Positions 5,553 to 62,316 of a stretch of DNA of 64,000 bases are shown here, in pieces. Each line of letters begins with the position of its first letter. Position 1 is the first letter of the stretch. The notes beneath the pieces are model-generated. The model ran no database searches. It worked only from the letters and a program-made list of their open reading frames with translations, and had not been told where the DNA came from. The DNA is taken from assembly GCA_026770705.1 (NCBI GenBank), contig JANJGN010000042.1, positions 1,736,001-1,800,000 of the forward strand. Direction: 5' to 3'. The position numbers were made by a program, and so were the translations under genes. The stretch comes from Isurus oxyrinchus. Lineage: Eukaryota.

Positions 5553-5705
5553 CTAACTTGTTGACTATCGTGATCCATTCCCGAGGAAGATCTGGTCTTT
5601 CCAGATACGCAGAGTCCATGGCGGTGACAGATCTCCAAGTTATTATCATTACACTGGTATTAAGCCGGTTTACGGCTGTTTATTTTCCAGTCAGTTTCCT
5701 GAGCC
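5553..5705 (+). pseudogene. Truncated exon-2 fragment of a GPR139/142-like GPCR
   Basis: A (CT)n tract and ttacag acceptor precede (A)NLLTIVIHSRGRSGLSRYAESMAVTDLQVIIITLVLSRFTAVYFPVSFLS, homologous to the start of exon 2 of the other copies. It has an internal 12-nt deletion and stops after TM2. Confidence 0.85.
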
Positions 5706-5800
5706 ACTCAAAATACGAAACGGAAACATTCTGAATCTGAATTATACGTTTTGTTTTTCCGGAATTAGGTCTTTTCAATGTTTGTTCAACTGTGAAGCAT

Positions 5801-6597
5801 GAGGGTCAGATGTTTACTGTCTAGCTTCTCCGGATGTTTGGCTGTCCTCCAACAGCAAAACATTCAAGATTGTTCTATGTGTGTCCGCGATTTCTGTGCC
5901 TTGTGTTGACGGACGTTTTGGTAATGATACAAATGCTGCACAATGTAGTTTAATTGTTACTTCAATAATGTCATTAAAACCAGAATTTCTTAGTTAAACA
6001 GGTCATTTATTTTACATGCCTAGATGTTAATTTAAATTGATATCGACATAAATTTAACTCGCGATGGCTGTGGTATGTACAAAGCTCATTTAATTTGTTG
6101 ATCGGTAATGTGAATACAGTTCAATTGACAGGGGTGACAGCTGATTCGCACGATTTGTATTTGGGTCTCAGCTTTTCACCGCATTTAGAAGGCTCAAAAG
6201 GAAGCAACAGTAAGTTTTGTATCCAAAGTGCTGCCAAAAATAAGCCATGTGATACAGTAAATATTTTAGATAAGAAGAGGACAGTGTGAAGGATTGTTGT
6301 TGGATAACTGAAAGAGCAAACTGTGGGAGAAGGAATATAATTTGTGGGAGGGTGTTTTTTTGTGGCGATTTGAGCTTAACCATTACAGATCAGCATATTT
6401 TCTAATTGGCGTGAAACTATAAATGATAGTGGTATGTATTTTTCCATATTTTTGTTTACCCTCCACATGTTTATTCGTAAATTTATCAAATAGTTGCAAT
6501 CGATTAACTGTTATGAAGAGCACTTTTAACTCTGTTGCTGCTGTTAACTGCTCCATTCAATTCTCCTAAGATGCATTTTGTTGTCAACGCTGTGTAA
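5801..6597 (+). repeat. Local direct duplication, copy 2
   Basis: Colinear with 3904-4720. Confidence 0.9.
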
Positions 6598-6859
6598 TGC
6601 CCATCGGAGTTCATGACTGATGTAATCCTGGCCTTAACTCCGTTTTCCTGCCAGACTGAGTAACCATCGGATCTCCTGTGGATCAATAATTTGTCTAACT
6701 ATTCCTTGAATATATTTAGTGCCCCTGCCGTCTCTTGTTTTCTGGAGAAGACAATTCCAAAGTCTCCAGAACCTCCTCATCCCCTGGTACTTTTGCCTAC
6801 GAACCTTCCTTTATCAGTAACAATAGACCTAGATTTTGTCGTGGAAAATCACAATGAAT

Positions 6860-7840
6860 AAAATCTCTCCGGCCGAGAACAGTCTGCACTGAAAATCATG
6901 CTACAGAACTGCAATTACGCAAATTGAATGTAACCTCACTGATCAAGACATCTGCACACGAAGCATAGCTGCTGGGAAATTAAAAGGTTCACAGTGATCC
7001 ATTGGGACTGTCCACCACAGTGAACCACAGAAGCTCAAATTAAAAGTAAGAATGCAGAACTAAACCAGTCCAGTCTGAATGCAAATGTCCATGTACACAT
7101 TTATTAGCACCGAGCAGACTTTCATAAATCTACACGAAACATAACCATGCTCGGCCAGTCCTGTCTCCATCGAATACAGCAGTAATGAAATTGATTATTC
7201 TATATGGAATGTAATCACGCTGAAGTGAAATTTTCCACTGCAAGAAAGAAAGTGTTCACAGCCGGGGCTGTGCACATTGTACGTAGTTGTGTTCCACTGG
7301 GCAAAGTTGACAATAATCGGGCAAAAAGTCGTCCATGTACATTTAGTGTAACAGGATAGAAATTGGCCTGTTCGTACTGAGTGGAGATGTGCACAATTTA
7401 ACCTGAATGCAGTGAATGCAATTTACTGAACTGGACAGTCACACCAGCGTGATAATCCCCTAAACTGGTTTTCCACTAAACAGTGATTGCTAACGAGCTG
7501 AACAGGACTTTCTACATGGCATATAACCATGTTGATTTGGAGTGCTCCATCATTAATTTAATCATGCTCAACAGGAGGTTGTCTTCTCTGAATGTGAGTG
7601 GACTGAGCTTAGACTGAAAGCACCAAGCACACACGTCCTGAACTGGATCTTGCCACACAAAATGTAAATTCACACACCTGTGCACTTTCGTTATTGCCGG
7701 GATTGACATGGCTACACTAACTGAATTGAACTAGTCCACAATGGAAGTAACCATGCCAAACCAGGCATGCGCACAGTGAATATAACCGTGCTGAGCTGCA
7801 CATTTCTACACTGAATGTAAACACCCTGAATGGAATTAAA
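6860..7840. repeat. Highly degenerate tandem array, ~35-bp period
   Basis: Recurrent unit resembling tccacactgaatgtaaccatgctgaactgga; unit starts at 7735, 7770 and 7805 are 35 bp apart. Confidence 0.55.
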
Positions 7841-7849
7841 CAGGAAACG

Positions 7850-9510
7850 ATGGAAATACTCAAGATATCCGGCAGCATGTGACCTTTCATCAGATCAGTC
7901 AAAAGTTACAGATGGAACAGTTTTAATGCAAGTGTAGAGGCAAAAAACGGTTTTGGGGGGAAAAGGTTCAAAAGGAGATGCTTCTGGTAAATGGGAAAAC
8001 AGGAGAAATCAAATGACAAAAGCAGTGATGGTGGAAGTCAAAGTGGAACAAGGAAAAGCAGAAGAGGAATGTCTAAAAGATGGCAAACTGTTTATAACAG
8101 AATCAAAATCAAGAGATGTTTTCCCAACGCAATAACAAAGAGCAAAGAAGGAAGAAAAATCGTGTGATCACGATTGTTGAAATTTATGGAAAATCCAAAA
8201 GCCTAGAAAGTGCCTTAAGGAAATATGAGATTTTACTCCTGGAGCACAGGTTCCATTTCCTTGGAGCAGTAGGAGGGTTCAATGACAGTCATGTCAAAGT
8301 GAGAATGGAACAGATAATTAGGGTGACAAGTGACCAGAAGATCACACTTGTGGACCGAATGGATGTACCTGAGAAATTATCACCAATCTACATTTAACCT
8401 CCAGAATGTGGAGCAGGCTGCATATTGAGCAGTGAACAGGGTATACTCAATGGACAGAAGTTCAAACAAATCGATTTTCCATTTAGAAGCATTGTTTGGG
8501 ACGTAGGACAGAGAGAAGGGCATGGAGACAGGGGCTGGCGTTGCATGTTCATTGCGTGCATGGGAACGTTCTTCAGAAAAGGAAGGGTTGGATTGACTTT
8601 GGAGGAGACAAGTGCAGAGTGGAGCAAAGACCCATTCTCAATGTTAAATAGTAGAAGTGAGTTGGGCATATTGGGCAGTGACAACATGCCGGATGAGTTT
8701 GAAAATGCAGAGGTGGACCAAATGATACAAGAGATGTGTGGAATGGTAGGCAAGGGCAAGGAGAAGCCTACTATGGATCCTGGAGGGGGAGAAGGTGTGA
8801 AAGCAGAAGTGTGAGACATGTTACATGTACTGCACTGGGTTCTGTCAACCACGGTGCGCTGGAAATACTCGGCTGAAGTAATTGGAAGCTCTATTGGAGA
8901 GAGCTAGAAGTGATAATCGAACATATTCAGCAGAAACTGAGATTCTGAGAGAACGGAAAAGTTCCTTTCCAGTAAACGATGTGCATGGATGTGTATTCAA
9001 GATAGCTGGTTGTTGGTGAGCTTCTGTTGAATATTGGGCCATAGCCAATTCCCCGATGTGTCCACATCAAAGCTGCAGAAGGAAATATAAATTTCAAACA
9101 TGGAGCAAGTAAGTGCATGGGGAGGGTTACATTCCAAAGCAAACGTAACCTCATTTTCCAGTTTGGGGGTTGAACGAGATCAATACTGATCTGGTCATGA
9201 ATATACCAGGCAAAAGTGTGATGGAGGTGCTTGAGTGGGACTGGATCAATAATTCTGCTACAAATCCATCCAAAAGCCAAACAGAAATAGGACACAAGCC
9301 AATACCCATAGCATTGGCGTTTCATTTACAGAGTTTTCGTCGTGAGTTGACGTCCAAGCAGGCAGAGAGGCTGATGATGGATGGCTACTGATTGGTTCCT
9401 CATTCCAGAAGGGAAAGGGAGCCACATTAACGTGATCCGTGTTCACACGGGCTGAAAAATGATCAAGAGTGAGAACTTTGTAATGTTTTCCTGCTGAGTT
9501 TAAAGCCATG
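7850..9510 (-). mobile_element. Decayed Penelope-like retroelement (RT and GIY-YIG remnants)
   Basis: Minus strand shows degenerate RT-like and endonuclease-like (GET..RL..R..EH-type, ~8340-8450) sequence. The terminus at ~7850 resembles the gaaaatgctggaaaaactcagcagg motif also at 45140 and 33710-33797. Recognised from memory of shark repeats. Confidence 0.55.
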
Positions 9511-9805
9511 GATGGTCGTGCACAGTGCTCACTTTCACAGTTACAATCGCTTATTTGGCTTGTTATTTAAATTTTAGGCAAAAATGCAACTTGGACCGTA
9601 CTCTCCTGTCGCGCCAATGTCCTTGAAAACAGATTCCATTCCATCAAAAATATAAACGCGAGCGTGGCAGCAGCTGCACTAAAATGTTTTTTTCAGTTAG
9701 TGTAATTAATGTAAAAAGGCAAACCTTCTCATTGTCTCCCTAGAGTCCGACATCATGTATAAATCTAAAAGTCTTTCGGTGTAGCACAGAGCGCACTTGG
9801 AGCTT

Positions 9806-12041
9806 ATGAGAGAAATGCATGGGATACCAAAAGGTCTGGTGTTCGCCATTTACTATCCCGTTCTTGCAGCTATCGGTATTCCAGGTAAAGTATTAGGGTT
9901 AGTTACCAGTTACCAGAATCATTTTTCACTCTATCACTTCTTTAATTTAGCTGTACTGCTTCTCTATGATTCACCCCATTAACAGGATAATTTGTTTTTT
10001 TATAATGTTTTCCCTTTTTTGCAGTATCCTTATCTCCACATTTGGTGCATTCTTCTTTTAAATGAGATTAAACCTTCCCTTTCCTTGCAATATTACTGGT
10101 CATTACTGGTCTCTTTTCTCCACTTTGAGGCTACAATTTCTCCCCTTCACGAGAACAGTTTCTTCCCATTGCCACTATACTTACTTCCATTTCAGGGATT
10201 ACTATGTTTGCTTCGCCAATGCCATTTCATCTCTTTAAATAAAACTTTTCTGCCAACTTAGCAGTGCCGCCTCTCAGTCTAAACGTAATTAGATGTTGTT
10301 ATTGTCATTATTAATGTGGGCGAAGTATTTAGCACACTAATATCACAGTGCAATGTAAATCAATTGTATTACTGACACTGTCACCATGGCTGATTTATCA
10401 CGCTGTAAATGTAGCTCTGTGGTGTTATTGACACAGCTGTTGAATTACCTCACTTTGCCATGTGCATATATTGCTCCTTGCGCTGGAATGTGAATAACAG
10501 CTATTTCTTAAGTAAGATTTTGTATTCACGACCGGTCCTCAGTCTTTTGTTTTAGCTGAAATATAGCATATCGGGCAGTGCAACGTTGCTGAAGTCCAAC
10601 AGTTGGGCTTGAACGCTAAACCTTTTGACTCAAAAGTGAGATTGCTGTAAACAGAGCCATAGTAAGCATGATTAGTTTTACTCGTGGCTGTGAAGCCTTG
10701 TTCCTTTAACTTCGAATTGTTACAACTCAGATGCATCACATCTCCTTCATCTTCTTTTCAGTTAAGTAGTAGCTTTTTTTTTGCTGAACTTTTTTCAAGC
10801 TCTATAATGTATTTGTTAACCTTCGATTTTCCAATGTTTCAGAGTATTGTTATATTTTCCCGTCTCTAAACGTTGAATGAGAACAACATTGACTGTATTT
10901 CAGGGTCACAATGCAGGACGTTCAATGTTCACCTTGGGTTGGCCCTTAGTGTTGCTGACAGTACACAACAGATTGCTGTGTTTTAGGATATTTTCCTCCA
11001 GATCATCTTTCTGACATGCTAACTTGTTCCTCTCTTTTCAACTGCTGCCTGACTGAGAATTTCCAACATTTTATGTTCTAAATTTCTTTCCCAAAATTGG
11101 CTATTTGCTGGCTGCGTTTCGCTGTCACAGCTAATCTGGTCGTGATTGTGATACTGACTCGAGGAAGATGCGGTCTCTCCAAATGTATCACTTACTATTT
11201 GATGTCCATGGCCGTGACGGATCTTCTTGTCGGGATCACAGTTGTGATATTAAACCGGATTATAGGTATTTATTTCCCGTTCAGTCTCCTGGCCATCACT
11301 CCAGTCTTCAGCGTCAGACTTGTGCTAAATTATGGAGTCATCGATTCTTCTGTCTGGGTAACAGTGGCTTTCACCTTTGACCGATTTGTAGCCATTTGCT
11401 GCCAGAAGCTGAAAATTAAATATTGCACTAAGAAAATGGCGGCTGCGGTGATAGCAACTGTCTCTGTACTTAACTGCGTTAAAAGCATTCCCTTGTATTT
11501 TATGTGTGAGCCTGCCTTTATAATTGACAATATACCCTGGCAATGCAATTCAAAATCAATATTTTATACGGCACCTGAATGGGTCGCTTATGAAAGCATA
11601 ATCGCCGTTTTAACCCTTTGCCTCTCCTTCTTCCTTATTTTACTGCTCAATGCTCTGACCATCAGACACATTGTAGTGGCCAGTCGAGCCCGCAGGAGAC
11701 TCCGGATCCAGAGCAACGGAGAGAATCAAAGTGACCCAGAGATGCAGAAAAGAAGGAAGTCCATGGTTTTGCTCTTCTGTATCTCGGGCAGTTTCATCCT
11801 GTTACATTTGTTAAGACTTATAAACTTCCTCTATGTCCGAATTGCGAATCTTAGCTATGCAGACTCTACCAATTTCAATGAATCAAATTTTCTTATGGAG
11901 GAAAGCGCACGTATGCTTCAGCTCCTGAGTTCCTGCGTCAATCCGTTTATTTATGCAGGGACCCAGAGTAAATTCAGAGAAGAGTTAAAGAATGGTGTGA
12001 AATTCCCACTGAATCTGCTTGTTAAATTATTTAAAAGATGA
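9806..12041 (+). CDS. GPR139/GPR142-like class-A GPCR, copy 1; join(9806..9884,11131..12041), 329 aa (alternative start 9815)
   Basis: Exon 1 MREMHGIPKGLVFAIYYPVLAAIGIP ends CCAG|gtaaag; acceptor gctgtcacag|CT; the phase-1 intron restores the frame. Seven hydrophobic segments with MAVTDL, FTFDRFVAIC and NPFIY motifs. Confidence 0.92.
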
Positions 12042-13189
12042 TAACAATAAAATTCAACATGAGTCATAATTTGTGTTCCATCCATTGCTGCTTTTGTTTA
12101 TCTCACACAAAAGTTTTGTCTCCCGGAAGCAGCGTCATTTTCTTTGAGTCCCTTTTCCTCCGTGTGAATTTAACAATGTATAAAGAACGTTGCCTGCTCC
12201 CTGTTAGTTTTTAGATGTCTTCCTCGTGCGAGCAGGGGCCTGGTACATCCACACCAGACGCCAGGGCCTTGGAAATCCATGTAGGAGACAGAGAGTCCGG
12301 CTTAGATCTGATATTGGATACCAAAATTTAACAATTTAACGTAGGAACCTCAATGTTATTGCTTTGTGTGGTTTATACCTTATAGGTAAAAGGCGTTCTG
12401 AAACGGTAACAAATGCTGCTCCCATGCATTGTTCTCAACTCACTAGTCACCGCTTCACACTCGCTAACCCTTGTCATTAAACATAGGAATAAGGGGCAGG
12501 AAAAAATGAACAACAGTAATTCGCCTTCTACACTTTCAACCGGACAATTACGATGACATTTCCAGTATTATCAAACAGCATAAATCGAGTCTAACTACAG
12601 TGTCTTATTTTCAACGGGCATCAATCGTGAACAACAGAATTATTAAAAATCACTCATCAAATGTAATGGCAAATTCAGAATTTTATGGCCCCTCTCGGCG
12701 GCGAGATTTTTTGGTTCTGCCAAAGCCAATGAGCTTTTGAATGACTCGTCACACTTTACAGCACTGCCGCTCCCCACTGACCATGCACAAACACATTTCT
12801 TACCATCCTGATAGCCACAAAATCTCACGCCAGAGAAGTTATTGGCTGCTCATTGCAACAGATCATTATCCCAATCTCGGGTGAGTACTGCACATGCGCT
12901 TGGGGTATGGCAGTTCTCCTGCTCCCCAAATGCAAAATGCGGCACAGGTCTCAATATTTGTCACTGTTGCCAGCGGAAGATCGTGAGTAAGGAAGTAATT
13001 ATTTGTTATACCTCGAAAGGTCTTTCAATGTCGAGGTGGAAACTGATCCATTAGCCTTCGCTTTATATGCCCTTTGTCCAGATTATTAAATAACCCCAGA
13101 TGTGATCAACATCATTAGTAAGAACATAATTGAAATTCTGCTGCTACTTGAAATTTCACGCATCTGTCAGCAATTGAAATGCACGACTG

Positions 13190-17150: not shown

Positions 17151-17157
17151 TGACACA

Positions 17158-24990: not shown

Positions 24991-25089
24991 CTGAGTGACT
25001 GTTAACTAGAATGGAAAACAATGCGTGGCATCGACAAGAAGGGGAAAGGATGGAATCTTGTGTACAGTTGAAGTTGGATTCTGCTGTCC

Positions 25090-26000
25090 TTATCGTCCAA
25101 ATAATTTAACAATTTCAAGTAGTGGATATTTCACCCCATTCTTTAACTCTTCTCTGAATTTACTCTGGGTCCCTGCATAAATAAACGGGTTGACGCAGGA
25201 ACTCAAAAACTGAAGCATATATGCTTTTTCCTCAAGAATGAATGTTGAAAGATTGATTTCAGAGCTTGAAAAGTATTTAACATTTCCAATTTGCACATAG
25301 AGGAAAGTTATAAAAAGTAACAAGTATAACAGGATGAAACTTCCCGATACACAGAAGAGTAAAATGATGGACATTGTCCGCTTCTCCATCTCAGGGTCAC
25401 GCTGATTGTCTCCATTTCTCCGGGTCTGGTGTCTCCTGCGAGCTCTACTGGCTGCGAGAATGTGTCTAACTGTCAGGACCTTGAGCAGTAAAATCAGAAT
25501 GAATGGGAGACAAGGAGTTAAAATGTGATGAATGCAGTCATAGGTGATCCGTGCAAGTGAGGTATAAAATATCACTTTTACATCGCAGCACCAGGGCACA
25601 TTGTCAATTATGTACAAAGATTCGTATATAAAATACTGGAAGGTGTTTTTGACACAGCTGATTGTGCAGATTGTCCCTATAACCCGTGCCACCGTTTTTT
25701 TGGAACAACATTTTATTTTCAGCTTCTGGCAACAAATGGCCACAAATCGATCAAAGGTGAAAGCTGTAGTTAACCAGGCAGAGCTGTCTATGGCTGAATA
25801 TATTAGGGCTTCACTGAGACTGCATACTGGTGTGATTGACAGGAAACTGAGTGGGAAATAAATACCAGCAATCCGGTTCAATATCACAGCGGTTATAATG
25901 AGCAGGAGATCTGTCACCGCCAGGGATTGTAAATAATAGATTATACAGGTGGAGAGGCCGCATTTCCCTCGAGAAAGGATCACAATCACCGCCAGGTTAG
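25090..26000 (-). CDS. GPR139/GPR142-like GPCR, copy 2, exon 2 (911 nt, open frame); exon 1 not found
   Basis: Acceptor (ct)n-ttattgcag|CT AAC CTG; intact frame with LAVTDL, FTFDRFVAICC, NPFIY. Same length as exon 2 of copy 1. Confidence 0.88.
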
Positions 26001-26539
26001 CTGCAATAAAGAGAGAGAGAGAAAGAGAGAAGGTGGAAAGATACTAAGTTTGTGTGTGTGTGAGTTTGGGAGAGAATGAATACAGGAAGGTTACTGCTCA
26101 AACTATAAACAAATCAACAATTGTGTAGGATTCTGCATGAATTTGTACCTTTAAGATGTCGTCCCCAGTTGCGCAATTGCAATTGGCAAGTGATTCAGCT
26201 TTGAAAATTGAAATCTTAATTCAATATAGGGCAGGTCAAATAGTTTAACAAAAACTAATGGAGAACAAAAGACATCGTTAACACAGAGAAACCAACATAG
26301 AATTTTTGTATAAGCAACAAGAAAGTGTACGCATCTGCAAGGCATTGCAGGAAATAATGACTAAGGTAAGTAACAAGACAAGCAACAAGAAGTGTGGAAA
26401 CTAACAAGGGCGCGGATTATATCTCACTGAGGATCAATATAGTTCCTTTTTCTATATAATAATTGGCAATAATTATTGAAAACTATTCGTTGTTGTGAAC
26501 TTAGGGAATTAAACCTGCTTCTAAATATCGACATACAGC

Positions 26540-27179: not shown

Positions 27180-27560
27180 ACAGATTTACATTTGCACCAT
27201 GAAAACAGTGTGATAGCTCATCCACGGTTAGACTGTCAGTAACAGAACACAATCCCATTCATACTGTGATTAAATTGTGATCACTCAACCACAGTTAGAT
27301 TGTCAGTAACAGAAGGTGATCACATTCACACCGTGATTACAATGTGACAATTCACTTTCAGTTACGATACTGGAAACACAATGGAAAGATATTTAGACTG
27401 TAATGACACTGTTAAAATACAACTGCAGTAACAGAAGACGATCACACTTCCACCGTGATTACAATGTGATAATTCTCCTTCAGCAACAATGCCAGTAACA
27501 GAATGGAAATGCAATTGCACTGTGATAACAGTGTGAAAATACACCAGTACGAAACGGTGC
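27180..27560. repeat. Degenerate ~67-bp tandem repeat, part of the GPCR intron (homologues ~10320-10500 and ~59930-60230)
   Basis: cagtaacagaa occurs at 27237, 27304, 27426 and 27493. Confidence 0.6.
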
Positions 27561-27699: not shown

Positions 27700-29280
27700 A
27701 TATTATCTCCCTATTTCACATAGACACAGCCTAGCGCAGTAATAACTGAGACTGGATGTGGCTTAATTTAAGCTAAGGCATGGTCCTCTGAAGTAGTAAT
27801 AGAGATCGGGACTAGTGCAAAAGAATGGAAAAGGAGTCTAGTTTGGTATTTAAAAGGCAGGGTCTAGTGCAATAATAACTGCGGCGCATCTTCTGTAACC
27901 TGTGAGACATGATCTGGTAACGTCCAAACAGAGATAGGGCTAATGCAATATAAGCAGAGACATGTAGTAGTGCAGCAACAACTAAAAAAATGCTTAGTGC
28001 TGTATATAGGCACCATTAATCCAGCGCAGTAAGAACCGGGACTTTGCCGTATGTAATACAAAAAGAGACATGGTATAGTTCCAGAACAACTGAGATGGGG
28101 CCAAGCACTGATATAACTGAGGCAGGAACTGGTGTAATATTATGATAGGATCCATTTGGATATAAACCGAGACAGGGTCAGGTGCAGCAATACTGAGACA
28201 GGGCGGAGTGCACCAAATATTGATACAATATCTTCAATAATTGAAAAGGAAACTGGGTCAAGTTCAATAATTACTGAGACAAGGTCCAGCGTATTAGTAA
28301 TAGATGTGGCCTGGTGTAATATAATCACAGGCATGGTCCGCACTGCATACAAAAAGACAGGGTCTATTTCAATATAAACACATGCAAGGAAACGTCCCGC
28401 AGAATGTTAGCAGAGACGTAACCTAGATTGAGTTGAAAAGAGAGATGATCTAGTGTAACGTAAATAGAAATGTGATCTCGTGCATTATAAAGTGAGGCAG
28501 TGCTGGGTGCAGGAATTGAAGAGGCAGTAGCGTGGGTAATTTGAGCAGAGACATGGACTGACGAAGTAATAAAAGAGACAGAATCTAGTGTAAGGAAACT
28601 GACACAGGGTCTAGTGCAGTTTAACTTGATAAAGGACCTTGTGCAGTATAAATTATAATAAGGCCTAGTGCAATCACTCCCAGCCAATTACCTAGATTAG
28701 CATCAATAGAAACATGGACAAGTGCAGCAATGAGAAAGACATGTTATAGTACAATAGTAACAGAGAAAGGACATTGTGTGATATAAACAGAGAAATTGAT
28801 ATGCACAGCATTATCTGTGAAATTGTCAAGTTTAGTATAAACAGAGCAAAACCTGAGACACAGCCTCGTGTGATGCAAACATGAGCATGTTCTGGTTTAG
28901 TATTGAAAGACACAGGGCCGACTTCAGTAACAATTGAGACATGACCTAATGTCATGTTAGCCGAGAGATAATTCAGTGCAGTCATAACTAAGATATAATA
29001 GAAAGAGGGCCTGGATCAGGTATATCAACAGCAGAGATTGGGCTGAGTAAGGAAACAAATAGACATGATCTGCTGTAAAATGATCAGAAATATGACTCTG
29101 TGATATGATCAGAGATGGGGTCTAGTTTAATTTGAACAGAGATAAAGCCCATTGCGGTAACAATTGACAAAATGACTGTTTAACGTAAAGCAATCTCGGC
29201 TTCACTGCCATCTGCTGGACAAATGCTGCTATAGTCAATGCCGTGTAAATGCCAATTTCAGTTAATGCTTGCGATATAAA
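27700..29280 (+). repeat. Degenerate 27-bp tandem array with conserved tail, block A
   Basis: Unit resembles gcagtaataactgagacagggcctagt; the 3' part is colinear with blocks B and C. Confidence 0.8.
29203..29240 (-). promoter_or_regulatory. Putative CTCF site (block A)
   Basis: Minus strand GTCCAGCAGATGGCAGTG matches the CTCF core; motif evidence only. Confidence 0.55.
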
Positions 29281-29469
29281 TCATTGAATCATGGAATGCT
29301 TGCAGCACAGAAGTAGGCCTGTAAAGCTTAGATTTTGAGATATAAAACCATTTTAGTTAATATATCTACGTTCCGAATTCTTGATTTATATTAATGGAGT
29401 ATTTAATTGTCCCTGACCTAAAAAGTTCCCAATAAGTGGCATTTATGGATCAAGTAAAATTTATGAAGC

Positions 29470-33320: not shown

Positions 33321-33960
33321 GCACTAACAACAGAGACAGGGCATTGTGTTATATAATATGGACTTGTGAAACATTAACTGTGACCTCCTCTAGCTTAAGA
33401 TAAACATGGCAGGATCAACTCAAGTAATAACTGAGGGAAAGCCTCGTGTAAGGCAAACAGTCACATGTTCCAGTTTAGTACAAAGGGGGACATTGTACAA
33501 GGCAATAACAATTGGGACATGAAGTTTTGTCATATTAGCTGAGACATGGTTCCGTGCAGTCATAACTGAGAGTGTCTCACAGAACAGAAAGAGGGCCTTG
33601 GTTAAGCATGCTAACAGCAGAGATTGGGCCGAATACAGAAATAATTGAGAAATAGACTCCTCTAATATAATCAATGACATGACCGAGTGTTATTGAAACA
33701 GGCACGGGTTCCGCAGATGCTGCCAGACCTGCTGAGTTTTTCCAGGTAATCCTGTTTTTGTTTTGGATTTCCAGCATCCGCAGTTTTTTGTTTTTATAAC
33801 GGGGTCTAGTTTGATATGAGTGGAGACAGGGCCAACGGAGCAACCATTGAGAAATGCCTGCTTCACGCAATTTGAACAATCACGGTTTCGGTTCCATCTG
33901 CTGGACAAACCTTGCTATTGCAGATGTTGTGAAAATGCTGATTTGATTTACTGTTTCTGA
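33320..33960 (+). repeat. 27-bp array block B (truncated), with a Penelope-terminus insert at ~33708-33797 and a CTCF-like site at 33889-33926
   Basis: Colinear with 28750-29280 and 52260-52810. Confidence 0.75.
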
Positions 33961-34559
33961 CATCAATCATAGAATCGAAGAATTTTTACAGAAAAGTAAA
34001 AGGCCATTTCTCTGGCCTGTGCTAACCATCTAAAGGAGAAATTGACCTAGTTCCACACTTTTCCCCCTAGTCCAGCATTTTCCCTTTTCCGAAAATGATG
34101 CAATTTATTTTTGAAAGCATCAATTGAATCTGCCTCCACCACACTCTCAGCCTGTCCACTCAAAATCCTAACCACTCACTGCGCGAAAAAAAGTTTATTT
34201 TTAAATGTCGCCGTTACTTCTTTTCCTGATTATCTTAAATCTGTGCCCACTTGTTCTCGAATCTTCCAGCATTGGGAACACTTTCTCCCTGCCTACTCTG
34301 TCCAGACCATCATGCTTCAGGACAACTTTAACAAATCTCCTTTCAAACAGGGTATGGCAAGGGGTAAAAACGCTAATATATTTTTGCTGTTGTTACAAGA
34401 AAATAACATAGGTGGAGTGCGAAAATATGATCGAGTGAGGGCAACACAACTGATGCGAGCCGGGCTATAATTGCGGTAAACATGTATTTTTGTTTCATCT
34501 TCTATGGAAGAGGGAACAGTTAATATGTACATTTGATGCGCAAATAAGACCATAGGACT

Positions 34560-43709: not shown

Positions 43710-46268
43710 TTATTTGATTAATTGAGCCAGTGGACTGAATGGGTATTGGACAAGGTTCTTCAACTCCTCTCTGAATTTTCTCTGAGTCACCGCATAAATG
43801 AATGTGTTGGTGCAAGAGCTCAAAAGCTGGAGCATATTGGCACTTTCTTGCAGAATGAATTTTGGGTCGCCGAACCCAAGGATCTGATAATCATTCATAA
43901 TTCGCTCGTACAGGAACTGTGCCGTGTATGTCAGCCACAACAGGATGAAGCTGCCAGAGACAGCAAACAGTAAGACGATGGACCTTCTCCGGCTCTCCAT
44001 CTCTGGGTCACTGTACTTCTGGCCATTGATTTGGGTGTGGAGCTTCCTGCGGACTCGGCTTGCCACTAGGATGTGCCTGACGGTAAGAGCATTGAGCAGA
44101 AGGATCAGGAGGAATGGAAGGCACGGTGTCAAGATGCGGTCAAACCAGTCAAATGCTCTCCATGCCAGAGAAGTGTAACGGAGATCCTTCAGGCGGCAGT
44201 ACCAGGGCACATTGTTAATTATGTACACGGGTTCATGTATAAAGTACCATGGGACACTTTTTAAACAGCCCAAGGAACAAACCGTCCCTATTATCACCGC
44301 CGCAGTTTTCTCGGTGCAGTAATTTGTTTTTAACTTCAGGCAACAAATGGCCACAAAACGATCGACGGTGAAAGCAACTGTCAGCCAGACAGAACTGTCC
44401 CTGGACGCATAAATGAAAGCAATGCTCAGACTGCATACGGGAGTAATGGACAGGAAGCTGCCTGGAAAATAAATACCAGGAATCCGGTTCAAAAGCACGG
44501 CGGTGATGATGACCAGGAGATCTGACACTGCCATGGACACTAAGTACCAAGTGATACATCGAGAGAGACCACACCTTCCTCGGGACAGGATCACAATCGC
44601 CACCAAATTAACTGCAAGAAACAGAGAAGGATGTGAAGGAAAATTAGAGGATAAACTCGAAGAAACAGCATTCTATTGATTAGAGTTTACATTTTGCAGT
44701 GTTGATGTTTGAAATAATGAAACCTTTGTTACCATCCAAAGATATAGTAGAATAAGTCTGGGAGCTCGGGTGAAACAAGTTAATATTTAATCATTAATAA
44801 CATTTCGAAGTGAAATCCAAAAGGAAACAAGAAAAGGAAATACGATTCAAGGAACTGTGTGAGTTTCAAATGCATTGCAATAGTCAATTATTCAAATCTA
44901 AATAATAAACATTCAGGAGGAGAAAAGAAGGAAGATGTCTTGAGGAATATTTGATGGAAATCTGTCAGGGGCAGCGAATGTGGAGGGGCAGGAACAGATG
45001 GAATTAATTGAGGAGCTTCAAAATAAGGCAGAAGCCATGAATATTCTTATTCCATTGTTCCAAATTGTCAACAATGCCTCAATCTTTTATTTGAAATAAA
45101 AACAGAACACTACGGAGTCTGGAAACCTGAAACAAAAGCGGAAAATGCTGGAAAAAACTCAGCAGGTCTAAGAACATCTGTGGCGAGAAAAACAGAGTTA
45201 ATGTTTTGAGTCTGTAAGAGTCATGAAACATGGGGTTTTGAAACAAGGGAATAAGTTTTTGGTACAGTGTTCTGTTGCGGTTATCAAATTCTTGTCACTG
45301 AAGGACCAGTGCGGAATCTTACAGCAGGATAGTGTAATTTTGAAGTCCTACCAACATGCACAATCACATTATTAACCTGCAGAGCGCGTTTGGTTCACTC
45401 ATATCCCTTTATGGAAGGAAATCTGCCTTCTTACCGATCTGACCTGCATGTGACTCCAGACCGACGACAATATGGTCGACTCTTAACTGCCCTCTGAAAT
45501 GGCCGAGCAAGATATTCAGCTCCAGGGTATATAAGGATGGGCAGCAAATGTTGGCTCTGCCAGCGACGCCCAGTCCCGAGAAGGAATTAAGAAAAGGGAA
45601 GTGCTCCCTGGCAATTGACATTAAACAGCTTCGCTCCAATTTAAATTCAATTAACAAGCCAAGAATATGAAGCTGGCCTCCGTCATGGTGACCATGAAAC
45701 TATCGGACATTGTTGTAAAAACCCATCGGGTTCACTAATATCCCTTCAGGGAAGGGAATCTGCCGCCCTTAACTGCTCTGCCCAACATGTGACTCCCGAA
45801 CCAGCGCTAATGTGGTTGACTGTTTCAGCTGCCCCCTGAAATGACCCAACAAGACACTCAGTCCTCAAGGGCATTTAGGGAAGGGTGGTATATTCCGGCC
45901 CAGCTGGCTCTGCTCCAATCCTATGATCGAGTAACACTCACAATAATAATGGTAATGACAACGCTATAATTGGTGGCTCTGCAGAATTGACCAGAAACAG
46001 TTCGGTATGAGTGAGGCAGAGCGGTTGGAAAGTTCCCCAGCTCCTCGCAATTCACATGGACAGCAGTGGTTCAAGGAGACGGTCCACCATCACCTTCATT
46101 AGGAATGACCATTACATGGGTGGCCTAGCCAGCAATGCCAAACTCCTGTGATAGAGCAACAGAAACTGAGAAGCGGAGAAATCTGAGACACGTTTTACCT
46201 GGGACTGCGACAGTGGCGAGGGCGGTGTAGTATATGGCATAGAGCGGGCCTCTTGGTGGAAAGTGCAT
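43710..46268 (-). CDS. GPR139/GPR142-like GPCR, copy 3; complement(join(43710..44611,46199..46268)), 323 aa
   Basis: Exon 1 MHFPPRGPLYAIYYTALATVAVP ends CCAG|gtaaaa; acceptor ttcttgcag|TT; intact 7TM with MAVSDL, FTVDRFVAICC, SGSFILLW, NTFIY. A further in-frame upstream ATG exists at 46328. Confidence 0.92.
45400..45930 (+). mobile_element. Two tandem SINE fragments in the intron of copy 3
   Basis: gaaggaaatctgcc...gtgactcc core occurs twice. Confidence 0.7.
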
Positions 46269-49330: not shown

Positions 49331-49369
49331 ATCGTTGTGAAATTCACTTGCATGAAACATGGCGTGTTT

Positions 49370-51375: not shown

Positions 51376-51419
51376 CATTTCTAGATCAACGCCACCTTAA
51401 AGAGACGTAGAACAGTGCA

Positions 51420-52810
51420 CTAAACACCGGGAGAGTCTGGTGTGCTAATTACTGAGACAGGGCCGAGTGAAATTTAACCAGGGACTTTACGAGTGCAGGA
51501 TGAATAGAGACAGCATCTAATGTTATTTCATCAAAAACGTGTCCTAGTACACTAATATCAGGGACGGGGATGATTGTAATATTAACATAGATAGGACCTA
51601 TTCTTTAATAAAGGAGACGGGGCTAATGCAGTAATTAATGATACAGAGCGTGGATCAAAATAAAGTGAAAGAGGGTATTAATAACAGCACAGGGCATACA
51701 GTAATATCTTCCTAGACAGAGTCTAGGGCCTTAATAACAGAGATGGCCTCAAGTGTAAAAGAGACAGATATGATCTCGTAGAATAAAATCAGGGAAAGGG
51801 AGAGTGGAATAGAAGCAGAGCCAAAGGTACAAAGGCAAAGTCTCTGCAAATCCAGGATCCATTTTATTAAAATGAAGACAGACAAGCTCGAGTGAGATAC
51901 AGGCTGATACAGAGTCTAGTGTAAATTGTTCTGAAATATGGTCTAGCGGAATGCAATTGCAGATATGATTAAATGTGTTTTTAAGCAGGTCCGCGATCTA
52001 GTGGAACATAAAGTGAGGCATTGCCGAGTGCAGGAATAATTGAGGCAAGGTCTGGTGTAATACGAACAGGTCGAGTGTATTAACAACACAGGATCCAGTA
52101 GAAAGAAACACACAAAGGGTCTATTGGAGCTCTACCTAATTCAGGACTCTATAATATAAGCTGACACAGTGCCTGGTGAATTAAATACCGTCAAAAGTAC
52201 TAGGCTAATAAGAACAGAGCCATGGACAGGTACAACAATAACAGAGACTTGGTATTGGGCAACTACAGCAGAAACAGGGCATTGTGTGATATGAATGAAT
52301 ACATGTATTGATGCAGCATTAACTGAGACAGCTTCCAGTTTGGTAGACACGTGGCAGGCGCAGAGTCTGACACAGAGCCTTGTGAAATGCAAATAAAAAC
52401 GTGTTTTCGTTTAGCATAACCATAGACAAGCTCTAGTGCAGTGCCAACTGGGGCATGGACAATTATAATTTTAGCCGAGACCTGCTTCAGTGCAGTCATG
52501 ATTGAGATAGTGCCGACTGTAATACGGCCTTTCTCCAGGATATGAACATCTGAAGTTGAGCCTTTTCCAGAAACAACTGAGAGCTGAGTTTCTTTAATGC
52601 GATCAGAGACATGCCCCAGTGTAATAGAAACAGGATCGGTGTCTAGTTTAATATGAATAGACTAATAATGGGGATAATGGTGGTAAATAGACTAATAATG
52701 GGGATAGAGTTTACTTCCTATAATGTAAACAATCACGGTTTTACTGCCATCCACTGGTCAAACCTTTCTATTGCAGATGTGGTGAAAATGCCGATTTCAT
52801 TCAGTGTTTC
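51420..52810 (+). repeat. 27-bp array with conserved tail, block C
   Basis: Same unit as block A, with a colinear 3' part. Confidence 0.8.
52742..52778 (-). promoter_or_regulatory. Putative CTCF site with upstream motif (block C)
   Basis: Minus strand CTGCAATAGA-AAGGTT-TGACCAGTGGATGGCAGT; motif evidence only. Confidence 0.5.
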
Positions 52811-52814
52811 TGAG

Positions 52815-54055
52815 ATTAATCATAGAATACTTACAGCATTAGATGCCATTCGTCCAGTCGTGCTCGTGCTGGCCCTCTGCAGGAACAATTCATATAGCAC
52901 CGCTCTTTTCCCTGTAGTCCAGCAAATTTCCTTTTCAGGTAATGATATATTTCTCTTTTGAAAGTGTCAGTTCAAGCTACCTCCACCAAACTCTTAGGCA
53001 GTTTCTTCCAAATCCTAACTACTCACTCTGTGAAAAAAGTTTTTCCTCATGCCCCCATTGCTTTTTTTTCCGTCAATTAACTTAAATCTGTAGCCCTTGG
53101 TTCTCGATCCTTCCACCAATGGGAAGAGATTCTCCATTTCTATTCTGCCCAGCCCATCATGGTTTTGAACACCTCTAGCAAAACTCCTCTCCGCATTCTC
53201 TTCTGCATGTACAACAGTCCCGACATCTCCAGTATTTCTATGTAACTGAAATTCCTTACACCTGGAACTGCCTGGTGAATCTTTTCTGCACCAATTCTAA
53301 TGCAGTCACGTCCTTCCTAAAATATCAAGAACAGGACTCAATACCCCAGTTGAGGTCAAACCAGTGTTTTATAGAAGTTTAACATAGCTACTTTGCTTCT
53401 GCATTCTATGCCACTGTTGCTAAAGGGCAGGATGCTGTATGTTTTATTAACACCTCTCTCAACTTGTCCTGCTATCTTCAATTACTAATGCATGTTTGCA
53501 CTTAAGTCGTTCGGCTCCTGCTCTACTTAGTGTTGGGACAATTAATTTTATATTGCTTCGCTCGGAAGTTTCTACAAAAATGAATCAGGTCAAACTCCCC
53601 TGCATTAATTTGCATCTGCCTCTTGTCCCCTCATTCCAACACCCTATCTGTGTCCGCTTGAGGTTCTGCACCATCACCGTCACTTTTCGCAATTATTCCA
53701 AGTTTCGTACCATCCGTAAGTGATGAAATTGTGCTCGGTACACCAAGTTCTTGGGCCTTATTATATCGTGGGGAAAACAGGGGCCCGAACACCAATCCCA
53801 GCAGAACTCCACTATAAATGTTCCTCCAGTCCGAAAAATAACTGTTCATCACTAATGCTTGTTTCCTGACACTAAACCAATTTCGTATCCGTTTGCTGCC
53901 ATCCCTTTTATCCCATGAACTGCAGCTTTTCTCACAAGTGCGTTGTGCAGCTCATTAACAAATGTCTCTTAGAACATTATATACAGTACATCAACAGCAT
54001 TACCCTCATCAAATAACTCTGCTGCCTCATCAAAAAACTCCAGCAAGCTGATTGT
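52815..54055 (-). mobile_element. CR1 LINE RT and 3' fragment
   Basis: FSDWRNIYSGVLLGLVFGPLF and TDGTKLG peptides, with the CR1 tail. Confidence 0.8.
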
Positions 54056-55000: not shown

Positions 55001-55024
55001 TCAGAAGGGAAACTGCATTCAATT

Positions 55025-57300: not shown

Positions 57301-58860
57301 TTCAACGAAGTAATAATATTCTGCAAGCTGCCTTCTGATTTGATGTTCTACATGTTGAAATATGACTTTAGGACAATATACAAAGGTAAAGGAAGTGAGC
57401 AGGCGGGAGGTGGGCAAAACTCACATCATATGTGACGCCAGCACTACCTATTATTTCCAGTGGTGGCGCTGCAGCCGTTCTCTCAAACATTTCAAGTTCA
57501 TATTGACTTAACAAGTACACATGACCATTCAGACATCAAGGCAGCCCAGGACGCAAAACCACTCCGCTTTTCGGCTTAACAATTCAGAAAGCAAACACAC
57601 ATGGTGGTTACATTTCTCTCTTATATGCCTTGTGGTGATGAAAATCAGCATTACACGTTCAATGATTGACGCCATTCTGGAATCCACGCGAGATCTGCCG
57701 GAGTAAGTTCAAGGCTAAACAGACAATTTTTCTTAACCTCTGGAGCTTGATATTTATTGAGGAACCAAACTTGCCATTAGAGCAGGTTAATTTCAGAATC
57801 AATTACATTATTTTCATTGTTGAAGGAATAAAGAACTGAAACCATTTTAAAAGGTGACTATGGCAAAATCCCTGACAGTGAATTCAATTTACAGAAAAAT
57901 AACAGTTAAAAACTCCCATGAGATAAATTTGAAATAGTTCAATAAAATGCCTAAATCTTCAAAAAAAAGTGGACTTTATGTTTCACATTTGTTCTGCTTG
58001 AGATAGTAAAACATTCTCTTTTTGCATTGCATTAAAGGTCAGAACGGTGATGTCTCATTTTGAAGGAGAACTGTCTGGAGCACATGCCGCACATGGAACA
58101 GGTGAAAGGCCTTCCTATGGAATACATATGCAGGTGTTTCACCACGTTGAATGTGAAGGTATATCCCTTACTGCACCCAAACAGGTCAAAGCCCGTTTCA
58201 CCATTGTGTGTGCCGGCTGAAAACCCTGACACATATCAGGCTTGTGTATCCGCTCTCACTCGGGTAGATCCTGTGACACACGAGCGGTGAGCAGAATCAG
58301 GCTCAATCTTAGCCTTAGGTTGGACAAGTGAACGGCCGCTCCTCCGTGTGACTGTGCCGGTGGATCAGCTTGTGGGAGGTACAGTTAACGGCATTGCTGC
58401 ACTTGTAGGAAATAAAGCGCTGTGGAAGTGTGGGTGAGTCAATATGCTGAAGACCTGAATGAACTCCTGCACGCACTGCGTGCAGACTAAAGACGACCTG
58501 AACTCTTGCTTTGATGCCTCGGCAGATTGGGAGACTGAGTGAACCCCCCATGCAGACTGAGCAGAGTAGTGGCTTCGCGTCGAAATGAGCCCAGCTGTGG
58601 TCACCAAGCCGGTGAGCTACATGAAGCTATTCCCAGAGGAAAATGGAGTTAATTTAATGTTCACAATTCTCCATCGCCCTGTACAAGGAGCAGTTCGTGA
58701 TGAAATAGGCCAGGAGTTTACCGGTGGCCACTATGTCCCGATGTCTGTAGTCAAATGAGGTGGAATAACCGCGGGCGCATACGTGGGAAGGCAGCATATT
58801 GAAGGGCGTTTAATTAAGGGCTGATGGATGGAGGAACAGGCCAGCCTGATAGGTTTCTGG
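57300..58860 (-). repeat. Left arm of ~1.55-kb inverted duplication
   Basis: Reverse-complement colinear with 62425-64000 throughout. Confidence 0.9.
58030..58630 (-). pseudogene. C2H2 zinc-finger pseudogene (left arm)
   Basis: CSNAVNCTSHKLIHRHSHTEERPFTC and RPFTCSMCG peptides, with stops and frameshifts. Confidence 0.85.
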
Positions 58861-59446
58861 CATACAAGGGAGTCAAGCTTAATGGGGGGCGGGGCAATGG
58901 AGAAAGTGGAGGAAGACCATAAACAGATCAGTCACGAACTTATTGATTGTTGGAGCAGGTTCGTAGGATGCAACGGCCTATTCCTGCTCTTAATCCTTAT
59001 GTCCCAATGTCTCCACGTGGTTTTCAACCCCGTTGCACCTGTTTATGCATCACATGGACTGAATATTTACCAAGAGCGTAAACGTGGCTGTTTTCCTGGG
59101 GTAATTTTTCTTTTTCCAGTGCGATGAATAGTGCCAAGCAGTGCTTTGGCCTGACCCCAATTGCCATGAAATTACCGTTGTTATAAATGTAACTGGGATC
59201 ATTCTGTAGTCTCTGGGTATTTCAATTCAGAGCCCTGTCAGATCTCATGAAAAACAATTCAGTCTATGAAAACATAAACAGTAGCAATGCAGCAGCTGCA
59301 CGAATCTGTTTGTTACAATTAATGGAATTAATGCAAATTATCAAATCAATTCGTTATCTCCCTGGAGCCTGGCACCAGCTGTAAATTTGAGCATTTTGCA
59401 GTCAATTTCAGAACGCACTTGGAGCTTCTGATGGAAATGCAATGCA

Positions 59447-62316
59447 ATGCCAAAGGGTCTTGTGTTTGCCATTTATTATCCCGTCCTTGCAGCTATCGGC
59501 GTTCCAGGTTAAGTATTGCACTTAGCTTGTATCTGCGTTAATCATTGTTTAGCTGCATCATTTTACCAGTAACGCTTGTTAAATGTTACCTTTCTCCCAA
59601 TCAATGGATGATAGTTTATTCTTCCACCTCTAGAATCTGTTTCGTTTAACTGGTATGGTTTCCCGTCTATTACAGTATATAAATATAAAAAAATGTGTTT
59701 TTTCTACTTTAACGGTATTAACTCTCCATTATGAAATTATGAATTGTGCAACTGTCTGACATAAAATCACGATATACATTTTATAATTTCTCCCCATTAC
59801 ATTATCTTTTCACCTATTTACCAGAATATTTACTTCATATTACCTATTTAATTTGATGTCTTTAACGGTATTCTATCTTCCTGTGACAGGTGCAATTTCG
59901 TCATTTTAACTATATAATTTCTCCCATTTACCACTAACATCACACGATGTAAATGAATTTATAGTGTGCAGTTTGCACTATTACAGCAGGTGAATGAGCA
60001 TACGGTTATCAAGGTGTCAATGCAATCCCATTGTATTATTGACAACACCATTGTGGCTGAATTACAAAAAATGGTGTAAACTGTGCTGTAAATGTTTCTC
60101 TAATGTCGCGTAGAGACTGTCCCTGCTGGTCAATTCTCACAGTGATATCAGCGTAAGTTAAGTTGAATTACATATTGGCACTGTTACTTGAAGTGTATTC
60201 ACAGTGTACTTCTAGATTTTTGTCCTATTGACTTCGACAGCGACAGAATAATTCCCACAAGTAATTTACTGATTGAAAAGATTTGCTTAATCCGAGTAAT
60301 TATAATTAATCAATTTATTTAAATAATGTTATCAGGCAGCGAAATGTTAATAGATATAAAAAGATTTTTATAGATGTCCTTTGATGGATGGTTGCTTAGC
60401 CTTTAATTTAGAGAACTCTTTTTCTGAACTCAGTCTTTAACACTCTCTGCTTCAGTCAGGTTTCCCTCTGCATATTCCGTGCTACTGATGGGTCTAAACT
60501 GATGATTGGTGAGTGTGGGATTATCTTCTGCTACTCGCATCCAGCAATGTCTCGGATTGTTCCAAGCCTCAGTATTTTCTCCAGATAGAGTGAAGCCCCA
60601 TGACTGGTGGCATCTCTCCCTGTTATACAGCAGATTTTTTAAAAATTAAATATCCACTACATGACTTAACTTATCATTTATTCTGACTGAACATTGTAAC
60701 ATGGATGGTCTTTCTTCGAAAGATAACTCATCATCTGCGACTGGATCAGGTTGACAGTGAAGGTCCCAATGATTATCTGATAACGAGCTCCGATTTAACA
60801 ACGTATCATACTCAAAGCGTCCTTCACACAACCGGAAAATTGAGAACTATCCACACCCTGCACACCACCACTCCAACTCCTCCCCCCCAAGCCCCCAACT
60901 CCTGATGATATGTTTGAGCAAGCCGAATATTGAATTTTACAACGGTCAATATTTTTACAACAATTCATTGAAATGAGCCACTAGGATCCTCTGTGAATTA
61001 TCACCTGTGTTTCTGTTTGTTTCCACACGTTTTTTCTAGCTGTTTTGTTACTTACCTACTTCAATATTTTTATATGATTGCTGATGTGATCTTTTTGCGC
61101 ATTCGATGTATCCTGTTTAATTTGATACGTTTTTGATTTCTTCATGTCTTCTGTTATATCTCATTGGAGTATCGTACATTATTATTCCCCTGACTCGCCT
61201 TATGTTGCTTTAATCTGGAAGGATATTTTAAACCCAACAAAAATGTTTCTGTAGCGTCAAAGATAGGTTCAAACTTAAGATCGCATTGCAAATCTTTACA
61301 ATTCACAACGAACTTGAAAAATGAGTGATTTTGTTTGGAGTTCAATCAGTAACGTTCCTATACTCGATCTCCTCTCTCTCTATTACAGCTAACGTGGCAG
61401 TGATTGTGAATCTGTCTCGAAGAACATGTGGTCTCTCCAGATGCATCACTTCTTACTTGGTGCCCATGGCTGTGACGGATTTCCTGGTCATCATCACAGC
61501 TGCAATACTAAACCGGATTGTTGGGATAAATCTCCCATTCACTTTTCTGTCCATCACACTTGTTTGCAGTTTTCGTTCTGCATTAAATATTGCAGCCATT
61601 GATGGCTCCGTCTGGTTAACAGTCGCTTTCACCTTTGATCGCTTTGTGGCCATTTCTTGCCCGAAGCTGAAAGTAAATATTGCACTGAGAAGTTGGCAGC
61701 GGGAGTGAAAGGAATAGTGTCAGCACTGGCCTGTCTAAAGAATATATTCCTCTATTATATTTTTGAAAATATGTAAGCAATTAATGATATACCCTGGTTC
61801 TGCGTCATAAAAGTTACAAATTATACATCACCTGCGTGAACCACATATGACTGGCTCCATTCCATTTTAACCCCGCACCTCCCATTCGTTATGATTTTAC
61901 TGCTCAATGCTCTGACCATCAGACATATTCTAGTGGCCAACAGAGCCCGCAGGAGACTTTGGACCCAATGCAATGGAGAGAATCACAGTGACGTAGAGAT
62001 GCAGAAGCAGAGAAATTCCATCGTTTTACTCTTTGCCATCTCGGGAAGTTTCATCCTGTCATATGTTTTATTCCTTGTAACGGGCCTATATGTTCGAATT
62101 GCGAATGTTCCTTATTTATCAGGTTCCAATTTCAATAATCCAACATCTATCCTCCAGGAGAGTGGGTATATGCTTCAATTATTGAGTCCCTGCATCAACC
62201 CGTTTATTCATGCCTGGACCCAGAGGAAAATCAGATGCAAGATCAAGAATGGGGTGAATCCACTGAGCCTATTTACTACAACTTTTAAGTTTTGCGAACA
62301 GTATAATCGAACATGA
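59447..62316 (+). pseudogene. GPR139/GPR142-like GPCR, copy 4, pseudogene; exons 59447..59507 and 61389..62316
   Basis: Exon 1 MPKGLVFAIYYPVLAAIGVP has a 1-nt insertion after the homologous ATG at 59437. Exon 2 has a 1-nt deletion near 61673, TAA at 61774-61776 and TGA at 61837-61839. Confidence 0.92.

Follow-up and report, generated by a model that had tools for sequence, protein, structure and literature searches.

What does a cluster of related receptor genes, some intact and some in ruins, do in the genome of the shark Isurus oxyrinchus? The stretch of DNA analyzed here (hereafter the window) comprises 64,000 nucleotides (nt) of contig JANJGN010000042.1 (assembly GCA_026770705.1, positions 1,736,001 to 1,800,000 of the forward strand) and carries five paralogues of rhodopsin-class G protein-coupled receptor (GPCR) genes. 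A sequence-only reading had described these as a birth-and-death cluster of GPR139/142-like receptors and as a candidate lineage-specific chemoreceptor repertoire. We find that the window covers part of an old tandem array belonging to a large expansion of orphan class A (rhodopsin-like) GPCRs; as far as sampled, this expansion is found in elasmobranchs only, where it has given rise to more than a hundred genes per genome. The gene anatomy and the evolutionary history described below are, in our judgment, very probably correct; as to function, we favor, with a probability of about 0.55, the reading that the genes of this old elasmobranch array work as a ligand-diversified receptor repertoire.

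Five receptor copies of one compact design

When the three long GPCR-like open reading frames (ORFs) of the window were used in a self-tblastn search, exactly five related loci were recovered, which lie on both strands within ~57 kb and of which three are disabled. Copies A (9815-12041, plus strand) and C (46268-43710, minus strand) are intact, C being canonical and A odd; copy B (26000-25090, minus strand) has an open exon 2; copy E (59447-62289, plus strand) is a pseudogene; and copy F (5553-5704, plus strand; tblastn E = 7e-11) is a fragment. The open exon-2 products of A, B, and C matched the Pfam 7tm_1 profile at E values of 4e-19 to 2e-20 (69-74 bits, against a gathering cut-off of 30.5) over positions 2-260, 14-260, and 4-260, respectively, of the 260 in the profile, which covers all seven helices; with this profile match and with the micro-switch residues present, A, B, and C are class A GPCRs. 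The tally of the sequence-only reading (two intact genes, one orphan exon 2, one pseudogene, and one fragment, on both strands) holds. A Pfam search with the ORFs lying between the GPCR genes of the window gave no match.

The copies follow a common design, in which a 23-codon exon 1 is separated from a ~300-codon exon 2 by a phase-1 intron within transmembrane helix 1 (TM1). Full-length relatives start with 23 residues that are missing from the window ORFs; exon 1 was located by regular-expression search, by tblastn, and by a position matrix derived from 122 exon-1 peptides of known sequence. This matrix found three exon-1 sites scoring +63 to +84 bits, the next best position in six frames scoring -28. 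Every exon-1 site ends in CCAG/GT (the slash marking the splice site), a phase-1 donor, and a polypyrimidine tract followed by CAG is kept at all five exon-2 starts; in F (5500-5552), B (26001-26050, minus strand), and E (61350-61388), these acceptor tracts are (CT)n-like microsatellites. The intron (1246 nt in A, 1587 nt in C, and 1881 nt in E) lies between TM1 positions 1.48 and 1.49, one residue ahead of N1.50. Exons 1 and 2 were analyzed apart, only the three-base split codon being read across the junction, and the breaks of pseudogene E were filled with X for reading; the split codon encodes A in copy A, V in copy C, and A in copy E, in agreement with the junctions IP/ANL (A), VP/VNL (C), and VP/ANV (E) that had been proposed. 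The encoded protein is a compact seven-helix receptor of ~323 residues with a short N-terminus (~8 residues ahead of TM1), a short C-tail (~28 residues past NPxxY), and intact signaling motifs (D2.50, DRF, F6.44, N7.49, and Y7.53; helix positions were numbered from the anchors D2.50, R3.50, P5.50, W6.48, and N7.49). Every structural detail of the design described earlier (tiny exon 1, phase-1 TM1 intron, short N-terminus and C-tail) proved correct, and the tandem cluster is real: it occupies both strands, includes pseudogenes, and has a compact common gene design.

Copy C is the canonical member. Its exon 1 (46199..46268, minus strand; matrix score +64.0 bits) consists of an ATG start, 23 codons (MHFPPRGPLYAIYYTALATVAVP), and one further base, followed by the donor GTAAAA; its phase-1 intron (44612..46198) carries very high-copy interspersed repeats at ~45074-45785, and its open exon 2 (43710..44611) encodes the canonical family pocket. 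C is 84% identical to a Heptranchias perlo protein and has the canonical residues of its subfamily. The repeats in its intron (45074-45251, 45430-45518, and 45697-45785) reach depths hundreds of times those of their flanks in four DNA sequencing runs.

Copy A lacks no structural part: the promoter block, both exons, and the splice sites are present, and exon 2 is open. Exon 1 (9815..9884, plus strand; matrix score +83.6 bits, tblastn E = 2e-16) contains an ATG start, 23 codons (MHGIPKGLVFAIYYPVLAAIGIP), and the first base of the split codon, followed by the donor GTAAAG; the phase-1 intron (9885..11130) has GT..AG borders; and exon 2 (11131..12041; 7tm_1 E = 4e-19) is open to its TGA stop and encodes the rest of TM1 through the C-terminus. 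The tabulated pocket residues of A are strongly derived (R3.36I, W5.43S, P5.50L, and H at 6.48), departing at all four positions from those of all its relatives, and A may have changed function or may be drifting.

The exon 2 of copy B (25090..26000, minus strand) is open over 303 codons and has a good acceptor; no exon 1 for it was found in the window by protein, matrix, or nucleotide search, including searches against the exon-1 regions of relatives. The pocket of B is that of its Heterodontus relatives except for W5.38R and W5.43C, both unique to B; the residues replaced are kept in 81 and 80, respectively, of 83 relatives. Its branch is three times longer than that of its sister (0.24 versus 0.084). 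Given these TM5 pocket changes, the long branch, and the lack of an exon 1, B is probably a recently disabled gene. Upstream of B, where exon 1 would be expected, lie a 67/122-nt tandem repeat (27209-27543) and a dispersed repeat (28500-29300) that also occurs at 51995-52828 and 33423-34005; an insertion or deletion in this repeat region may have removed exon 1.

Both A and B depart from columns conserved at ≥90% at 15 positions each, compared with a median of 5 and a maximum of 14 among 83 members of their subfamily. We considered, and rejected, that A and B are decaying for want of R3.36 and W6.48, as I3.36 and Y6.48 are the norm of this subfamily; what is unique to A and B against it are the TM5 changes, plus H6.48 and L5.50 in A.

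In copy E, exon 1 (59447..59507, plus strand; matrix score +62.8 bits, donor GTTAAG) has lost the canonical start methionine (CNAM... versus MH... in relatives), and an internal ATG is present at 59447; its exon 2 (61389..62289) has a 1-nt deletion at 61675 and the stop codons TAA (61774-61776) and TGA (61837-61839), and was recovered by tblastn in two frames. Copy F retains only a 5′ piece of exon 2 (~50 codons, TM1-TM2), which is internally deleted and keeps its acceptor at 5537-5552; the exon-1 matrix scan found no exon 1 upstream of it. B, which lacks exon 1, E, with its frameshift and stops, and the fragment F are dead or dying.

An elasmobranch expansion and its distant kinship to GPR139

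Word-index protein searches with C and A as queries returned 2,164 matches (E ≤ 1e-5) and 2,133 matches (E ≤ 1e-30), respectively; taken as a lower bound, the family comprises at least 2,133 distinct proteins at E ≤ 1e-30. All named proteins among the best 120 listed matches for C, and among those for A, are from sharks, skates, or rays; one relative, the Logan protein P0001, is 91% identical. An exhaustive search of representatives gave 114 clusters (50% identity) at E ≤ 1e-30, and ten of the most divergent full-length representatives (42-50% identity) are all elasmobranch where named. In the C and A lists together, at least 109 distinct proteins are from Heterodontus francisci, the majority encoded on a single 59.5-Mb contig, and species-specific clades are found in Hemitrygon, Rhinoraja, and Heterodontus. 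No chimaera sequence turned up among the listed matches, although no search was aimed at chimaera absence. The earlier suggestion of a lineage-specific expansion is therefore supported by these counts.

At least eight automatic NCBI names are in use for members of this family (GPR139, GPR15-like, TRH receptor-like, capa receptor-like, vasopressin V2-like, and others, with FMRFamide receptor-like, sex peptide receptor-like, and PrRP receptor-like among the further ones). Such unstable naming shows that the family is uncurated, and gene-family counts based on names would miss it. No paper on this elasmobranch family was found in the literature searched, and a paper on catshark sensory organs (PMC11979771) does not mention it.

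A deep tree of 40 elasmobranch, salamander, coelacanth/teleost, and amphioxus sequences (mixture model, rooted on amphioxus) placed the elasmobranch genes in one clade (support 93/81), with a salamander clade as their sister (joint support 100/100) and with the coelacanth/teleost group and the amphioxus genes outside this grouping. This placement indicates an expansion confined to the elasmobranch lineage that started from a single ancestral gene of jawed vertebrates; judging by the tree, that gene survives at low copy number in salamanders, and in sharks and rays it has grown to more than a hundred copies per genome. The salamander proteins (P0225, P0271, and P0274, from Pleurodeles, Ambystoma, and Lissotriton) lie on a very long branch, and no tetrapod other than salamanders was among the representative matches listed. 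These salamander genes, named "probable GPR139", and the coelacanth/teleost genes are the nearest kin of the family outside elasmobranchs and have its N-terminal and TM1 design; as far as the representative search shows, both groups are low-copy, the elasmobranch branch alone being expanded. A coelacanth/gar/teleost group has been called GPR210A/B (PMC6504862), and the coelacanth/gar/teleost relatives found here, including coelacanth XP_005988539, may be these genes.

The sequence-only reading had also proposed fast turnover, which is not borne out in the window. When 83 A-like sequences were added to give dense sampling, copy A joined whale-shark and white-shark genes, copy B became sister to a Heterodontus gene (99/86), and copy E joined whale-shark and zebra-shark genes; copy C is part of a subfamily that occurs in many sharks and rays. 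The grouping of A, B, and E in a first tree, which would have made them recent local duplicates, was an artifact of sampling and long branches, and was rejected once the added sequences separated them. Pairwise synonymous divergence (dS) among A, B, and E amounts to 0.71-0.77, and each of the three differs from C by 1.27-1.38. Together with the kin of each copy in other shark orders, these values identify the window copies as old paralogues kept side by side; birth-and-death evolution holds in the long term, and species-specific bursts occurred elsewhere in the family. Ratios of nonsynonymous to synonymous divergence (dN/dS) of 0.31 for A versus B, 0.36-0.40 for comparisons with pseudogene E, and 0.20-0.25 for comparisons with C indicate that constraint acted over most of the history of the copies.

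The proposed likeness to GPR139 and GPR142 held up only loosely. Human GPR139 is the best match of the window proteins among solved structures (35-38 bits, E = 7e-8 and 8e-9, ~22% identity), but it is barely ahead of CXCR2 and the TRH (TRHR), CCK, and 5-HT2C receptors, and a representative search recovered much closer relatives in salamanders (36% identity), coelacanth (31%), two teleosts, and amphioxus; these non-elasmobranch relatives reach 75-137 bits, with 31-33% identity in the coelacanth/teleost group. When the salamander, coelacanth, and amphioxus relatives are themselves compared with solved structures, GPR139 leads by 4-12 orders of magnitude, and none of these relatives is a GPR139 orthologue. 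The shark family falls short of orthology-level conservation with GPR139 (~22% identity, versus 70% between human and zebrafish GPR139; PMC7318219). On these comparisons, the kinship of the shark family to GPR139 is real but distant. In design, GPR139 resembles the window genes in being a two-exon gene (PMC7318219), as are A, C, and E with their small exon 1 and large exon 2, and in having a short N-terminus and a TM1 motif of the form YY...(G)(L/I/V)P-xN. It differs in being a single gene rather than one of hundreds of copies, and in its CWxP motif, the proline of which is usually absent in the shark family, where position 6.50 is T in 68 of 104 sequences.

Amino acids had been put forward as ligands by analogy with GPR139. 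We compared the residues of the GPR139 agonist pocket, E108 (3x32), F109 (3x33), H187 (5x43), W241 (6x48), R244 (6x51), and N271 (7x38), with their equivalents as read from the HMMER alignment and helix anchors; these are I/Y/D/W/Y/N in C, N/Y/E/H/R/R in A, and I/Y/D/Y/L/Y in B. Copy C thus keeps two of the six residues, W6.48 and the N at 7x38, and has I, D, and Y in place of E108, H187, and R244; in copy A, one of the six is kept. Because this Trp/Phe pocket is not conserved, an amino-acid-sensing role is without support in the sequence.

Variation in the ligand pocket and a conserved putative promoter block

For the family as a whole, 32 canonical class A pocket positions, chosen beforehand from general knowledge, were compared with the rest of TM2, TM3, TM5, TM6, and TM7. 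Across 57 unbiased cluster representatives, entropy was 2.55 bits at the pocket positions and 1.40 bits at the others (p = 5.5e-8); in the extracellular half only, the values were 2.76 and 1.87 bits (p = 1e-5). The recently expanded A-like subfamily (median identity 76%) presented the same pattern (1.07 versus 0.57 bits, p = 1.5e-5). A sample biased to the subfamily of C, made up of the top matches to C, had presented no pocket enrichment (p = 0.07); this first, negative result came from covering one subfamily and was reversed with the unbiased sample. By contrast with the pocket, R3.50, N7.49, Y7.53, F6.44, and W6.48 are nearly invariant across the 57 representatives; D2.50, D3.49, R3.50, and N7.49 do not vary, and 103 of 104 sequences have Y7.53. 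The TM7 motif is NPFIY in A and B, and NTFIY (T at 7.50) in the subfamily of C.

Within the subfamily of C, the pocket is conserved and charged (R3.36, D3.37, D5.42, W5.43, R5.46, Y6.51, E7.36, and N7.39). Subfamilies keep their own pocket across species, and pockets differ sharply between subfamilies. Hypervariable pockets combined with constant signaling motifs look like a repertoire of differing ligand specificities; in this respect, with variation across the family concentrated in the ligand pocket, the earlier interpretation is supported.

A second feature that bears on function is a block of putative promoter and 5′ untranslated sequence upstream of copy A (9647..9814, plus strand), homologous to one upstream of copy E (59269..59437, plus strand). 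A and E are 75% identical over 249 nt (59269-59517 in E), a segment that comprises exon 1 and ~170 nt upstream of it; the block matches the coding sequence in its degree of conservation, while neither the introns nor the remaining flanks can be aligned. In both copies, CAGCTG, AATTAAT, TCCCT(A/G)GAG, and T(A/G)TAAAT follow one another in this order, ending ~50 nt ahead of the ATG. In A, these motifs lie at 9671-9676 (CAGCTG), 9704-9710 (AATTAAT), 9737-9745 (the O/E-like TCCCTAGAG), and 9758-9764 (TATAAAT); in E, they lie at 59293-59298 (CAGCTG), 59317 and 59326 (AATTAAT), 59359-59367 (TCCCTGGAG), and 59380-59386 (TGTAAAT). AATTAAT, TCCCTRGAG, and the TATA box fall within 62 nt upstream of both A and E, and 0.00 occurrences of this composite pattern are expected by chance. 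Copy C keeps the block in part only. The motif cores fit published matrices for Lhx, O/E, and TATA sites in olfactory receptor (OR) gene promoters (PMC3247239), which is suggestive of an OR-type proximal promoter with homeodomain, O/E-like, and TATA sites. The E-box CAGCTG, conserved in A and E, stands next to the EBF-like site; such E2A/EBF pairing is typical of lymphoid as well as olfactory genes.

What the receptors may do

If the genes of the array do form a ligand-diversified receptor repertoire, the receptors would most likely serve a chemosensory epithelium in sensing diverse small molecules of external or environmental origin, and would be transcribed from a short proximal promoter with homeodomain-type, O/E(EBF)-like, and TATA sites. 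The OR, TAAR, and ORA/V1R families offer the closest parallels to such a repertoire. Like the shark genes, they are compact, encode nearly the whole receptor in one exon, form tandem arrays on both strands with pseudogenes and fragments, undergo species-specific bursts, and vary mainly in the pocket while their signaling motifs stay constant; the motifs upstream of A and E suggest a proximal promoter with homeodomain, O/E-like, and TATA cores like theirs. The shark family differs from them in lacking specific sequence kinship, in having a coding intron in TM1, and in lacking an N-terminal glycosylation site, the latter because its N-terminus is very short. In catshark, moreover, the OR, ORA, and TAAR families number only 5-8 genes each (PMC6368271), and the whale-shark genome paper noted a relative paucity of GPCRs in cartilaginous fishes (PMC8455134). 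We regard a chemosensory role as a tentative proposal, somewhat short of an even chance.

Several points weigh against a diversified repertoire, and against a sensory one in particular. Three of the five window copies are non-functional. Pocket-focused variation would arise in any paralogous GPCR family with different ligands, and hence shows ligand diversity rather than chemosensation, and the conserved charged pocket of the subfamily of C would also suit a conserved endogenous ligand. The EBF (O/E) site and E-box are equally a lymphoid signature. In a search of sequencing runs with gene C, no RNA run containing the gene was found; the six runs that contain ~30% of the sampled gene C words are genomic DNA, as their contigs cover the intron and cross the intron/exon boundary. 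In addition, a catshark study reports no GPCR among the 50 most specific genes of a "brain & olfactory epithelium" library (PMC11979771).

A bolder form of the chemosensory proposal is that the family is the main odorant-receptor repertoire of sharks and rays, unrelated to OR, TAAR, V1R, and V2R, with one gene expressed per olfactory neuron from Lhx2/Ebf-type promoters. We consider this stronger form doubtful.

Alternatively, the family could consist of receptors for endogenous neuropeptides or metabolites that act in brain, gut, or endocrine tissue and carry on the role of GPR139, GPR142, and their invertebrate relatives. GPR139 is indeed the nearest characterized receptor, followed in the match lists by the neurotensin, TRH, CCK, and neuromedin-U receptors; R3.36, D3.37, D5.42, R5.46, E7.36, and N7.39 are identical across sharks and rays in the subfamily of C, as expected for one conserved ligand; and a dN/dS of 0.2 reflects real constraint. 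However, the GPR139 agonist pocket is not conserved, and over 100 copies per genome with species-specific bursts, many pseudogenes, and hypervariable pockets between subfamilies would be unusual for such receptors, since a matching set of ligand genes would be needed. We judge this explanation unlikely.

Somewhat less likely again is an immune-cell repertoire of chemoattractant or pattern-sensing receptors on leukocytes, comparable to the chemokine or formyl-peptide receptor expansions and expressed in lymphoid cells. The window contains a single germline antigen-receptor V segment (2713-3065, plus strand; WYVQ...DTATYFCA), which ends in a 23-nt-spacer recombination signal sequence (23-RSS; CACAGTG, 23-nt spacer, ACAAAAA at 3030-3065) and lies 2.5 kb from copy F. 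This proximity, the E-box and EBF-type site in the promoter block (both used by lymphoid factors), and the presence of CXCR2 and GPR15 among the weaker solved-structure matches are consistent with an immune role. Physical interleaving with V genes, though, need not mean common function: the mammalian TRA/TRD locus, for instance, has ordinary olfactory receptor genes on its flanks. Upstream of C the E-box is missing, the negative search for RNA runs weighs against this explanation as well, and more than 100 copies with a diversified pocket far exceed any known leukocyte GPCR family.

Finally, the array could be mostly genomic debris, carried along by segmental duplication in a repeat-rich region and without any repertoire role, as the three disabled copies, the excess of conserved-column departures in A and B over all 83 subfamily members, and the long branch of B might suggest, but we hold this to be very improbable given a dN/dS of 0.20-0.40 even between old copies, hundreds of full-length open gene models with invariant signaling motifs in many species, the 84% identity of C to its Heptranchias counterpart, and a promoter conserved alongside the coding sequence.

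We thus return to a ligand-diversified repertoire as the reading we favor. Shark genome papers have stressed how few GPCRs and olfactory receptors these animals possess (PMC8455134, PMC6368271), yet elasmobranch olfaction is acute, and the family described here provides over a hundred receptor genes per genome. Should the family be immune or endocrine, it would still be among the largest unstudied radiations of vertebrate GPCRs. If it is chemosensory, it would fill a long-standing gap and add an independent origin of a vertebrate odorant-receptor family; and if it were the main odorant repertoire, it would account for the good sense of smell of elasmobranchs despite their mere handful of classical ORs.

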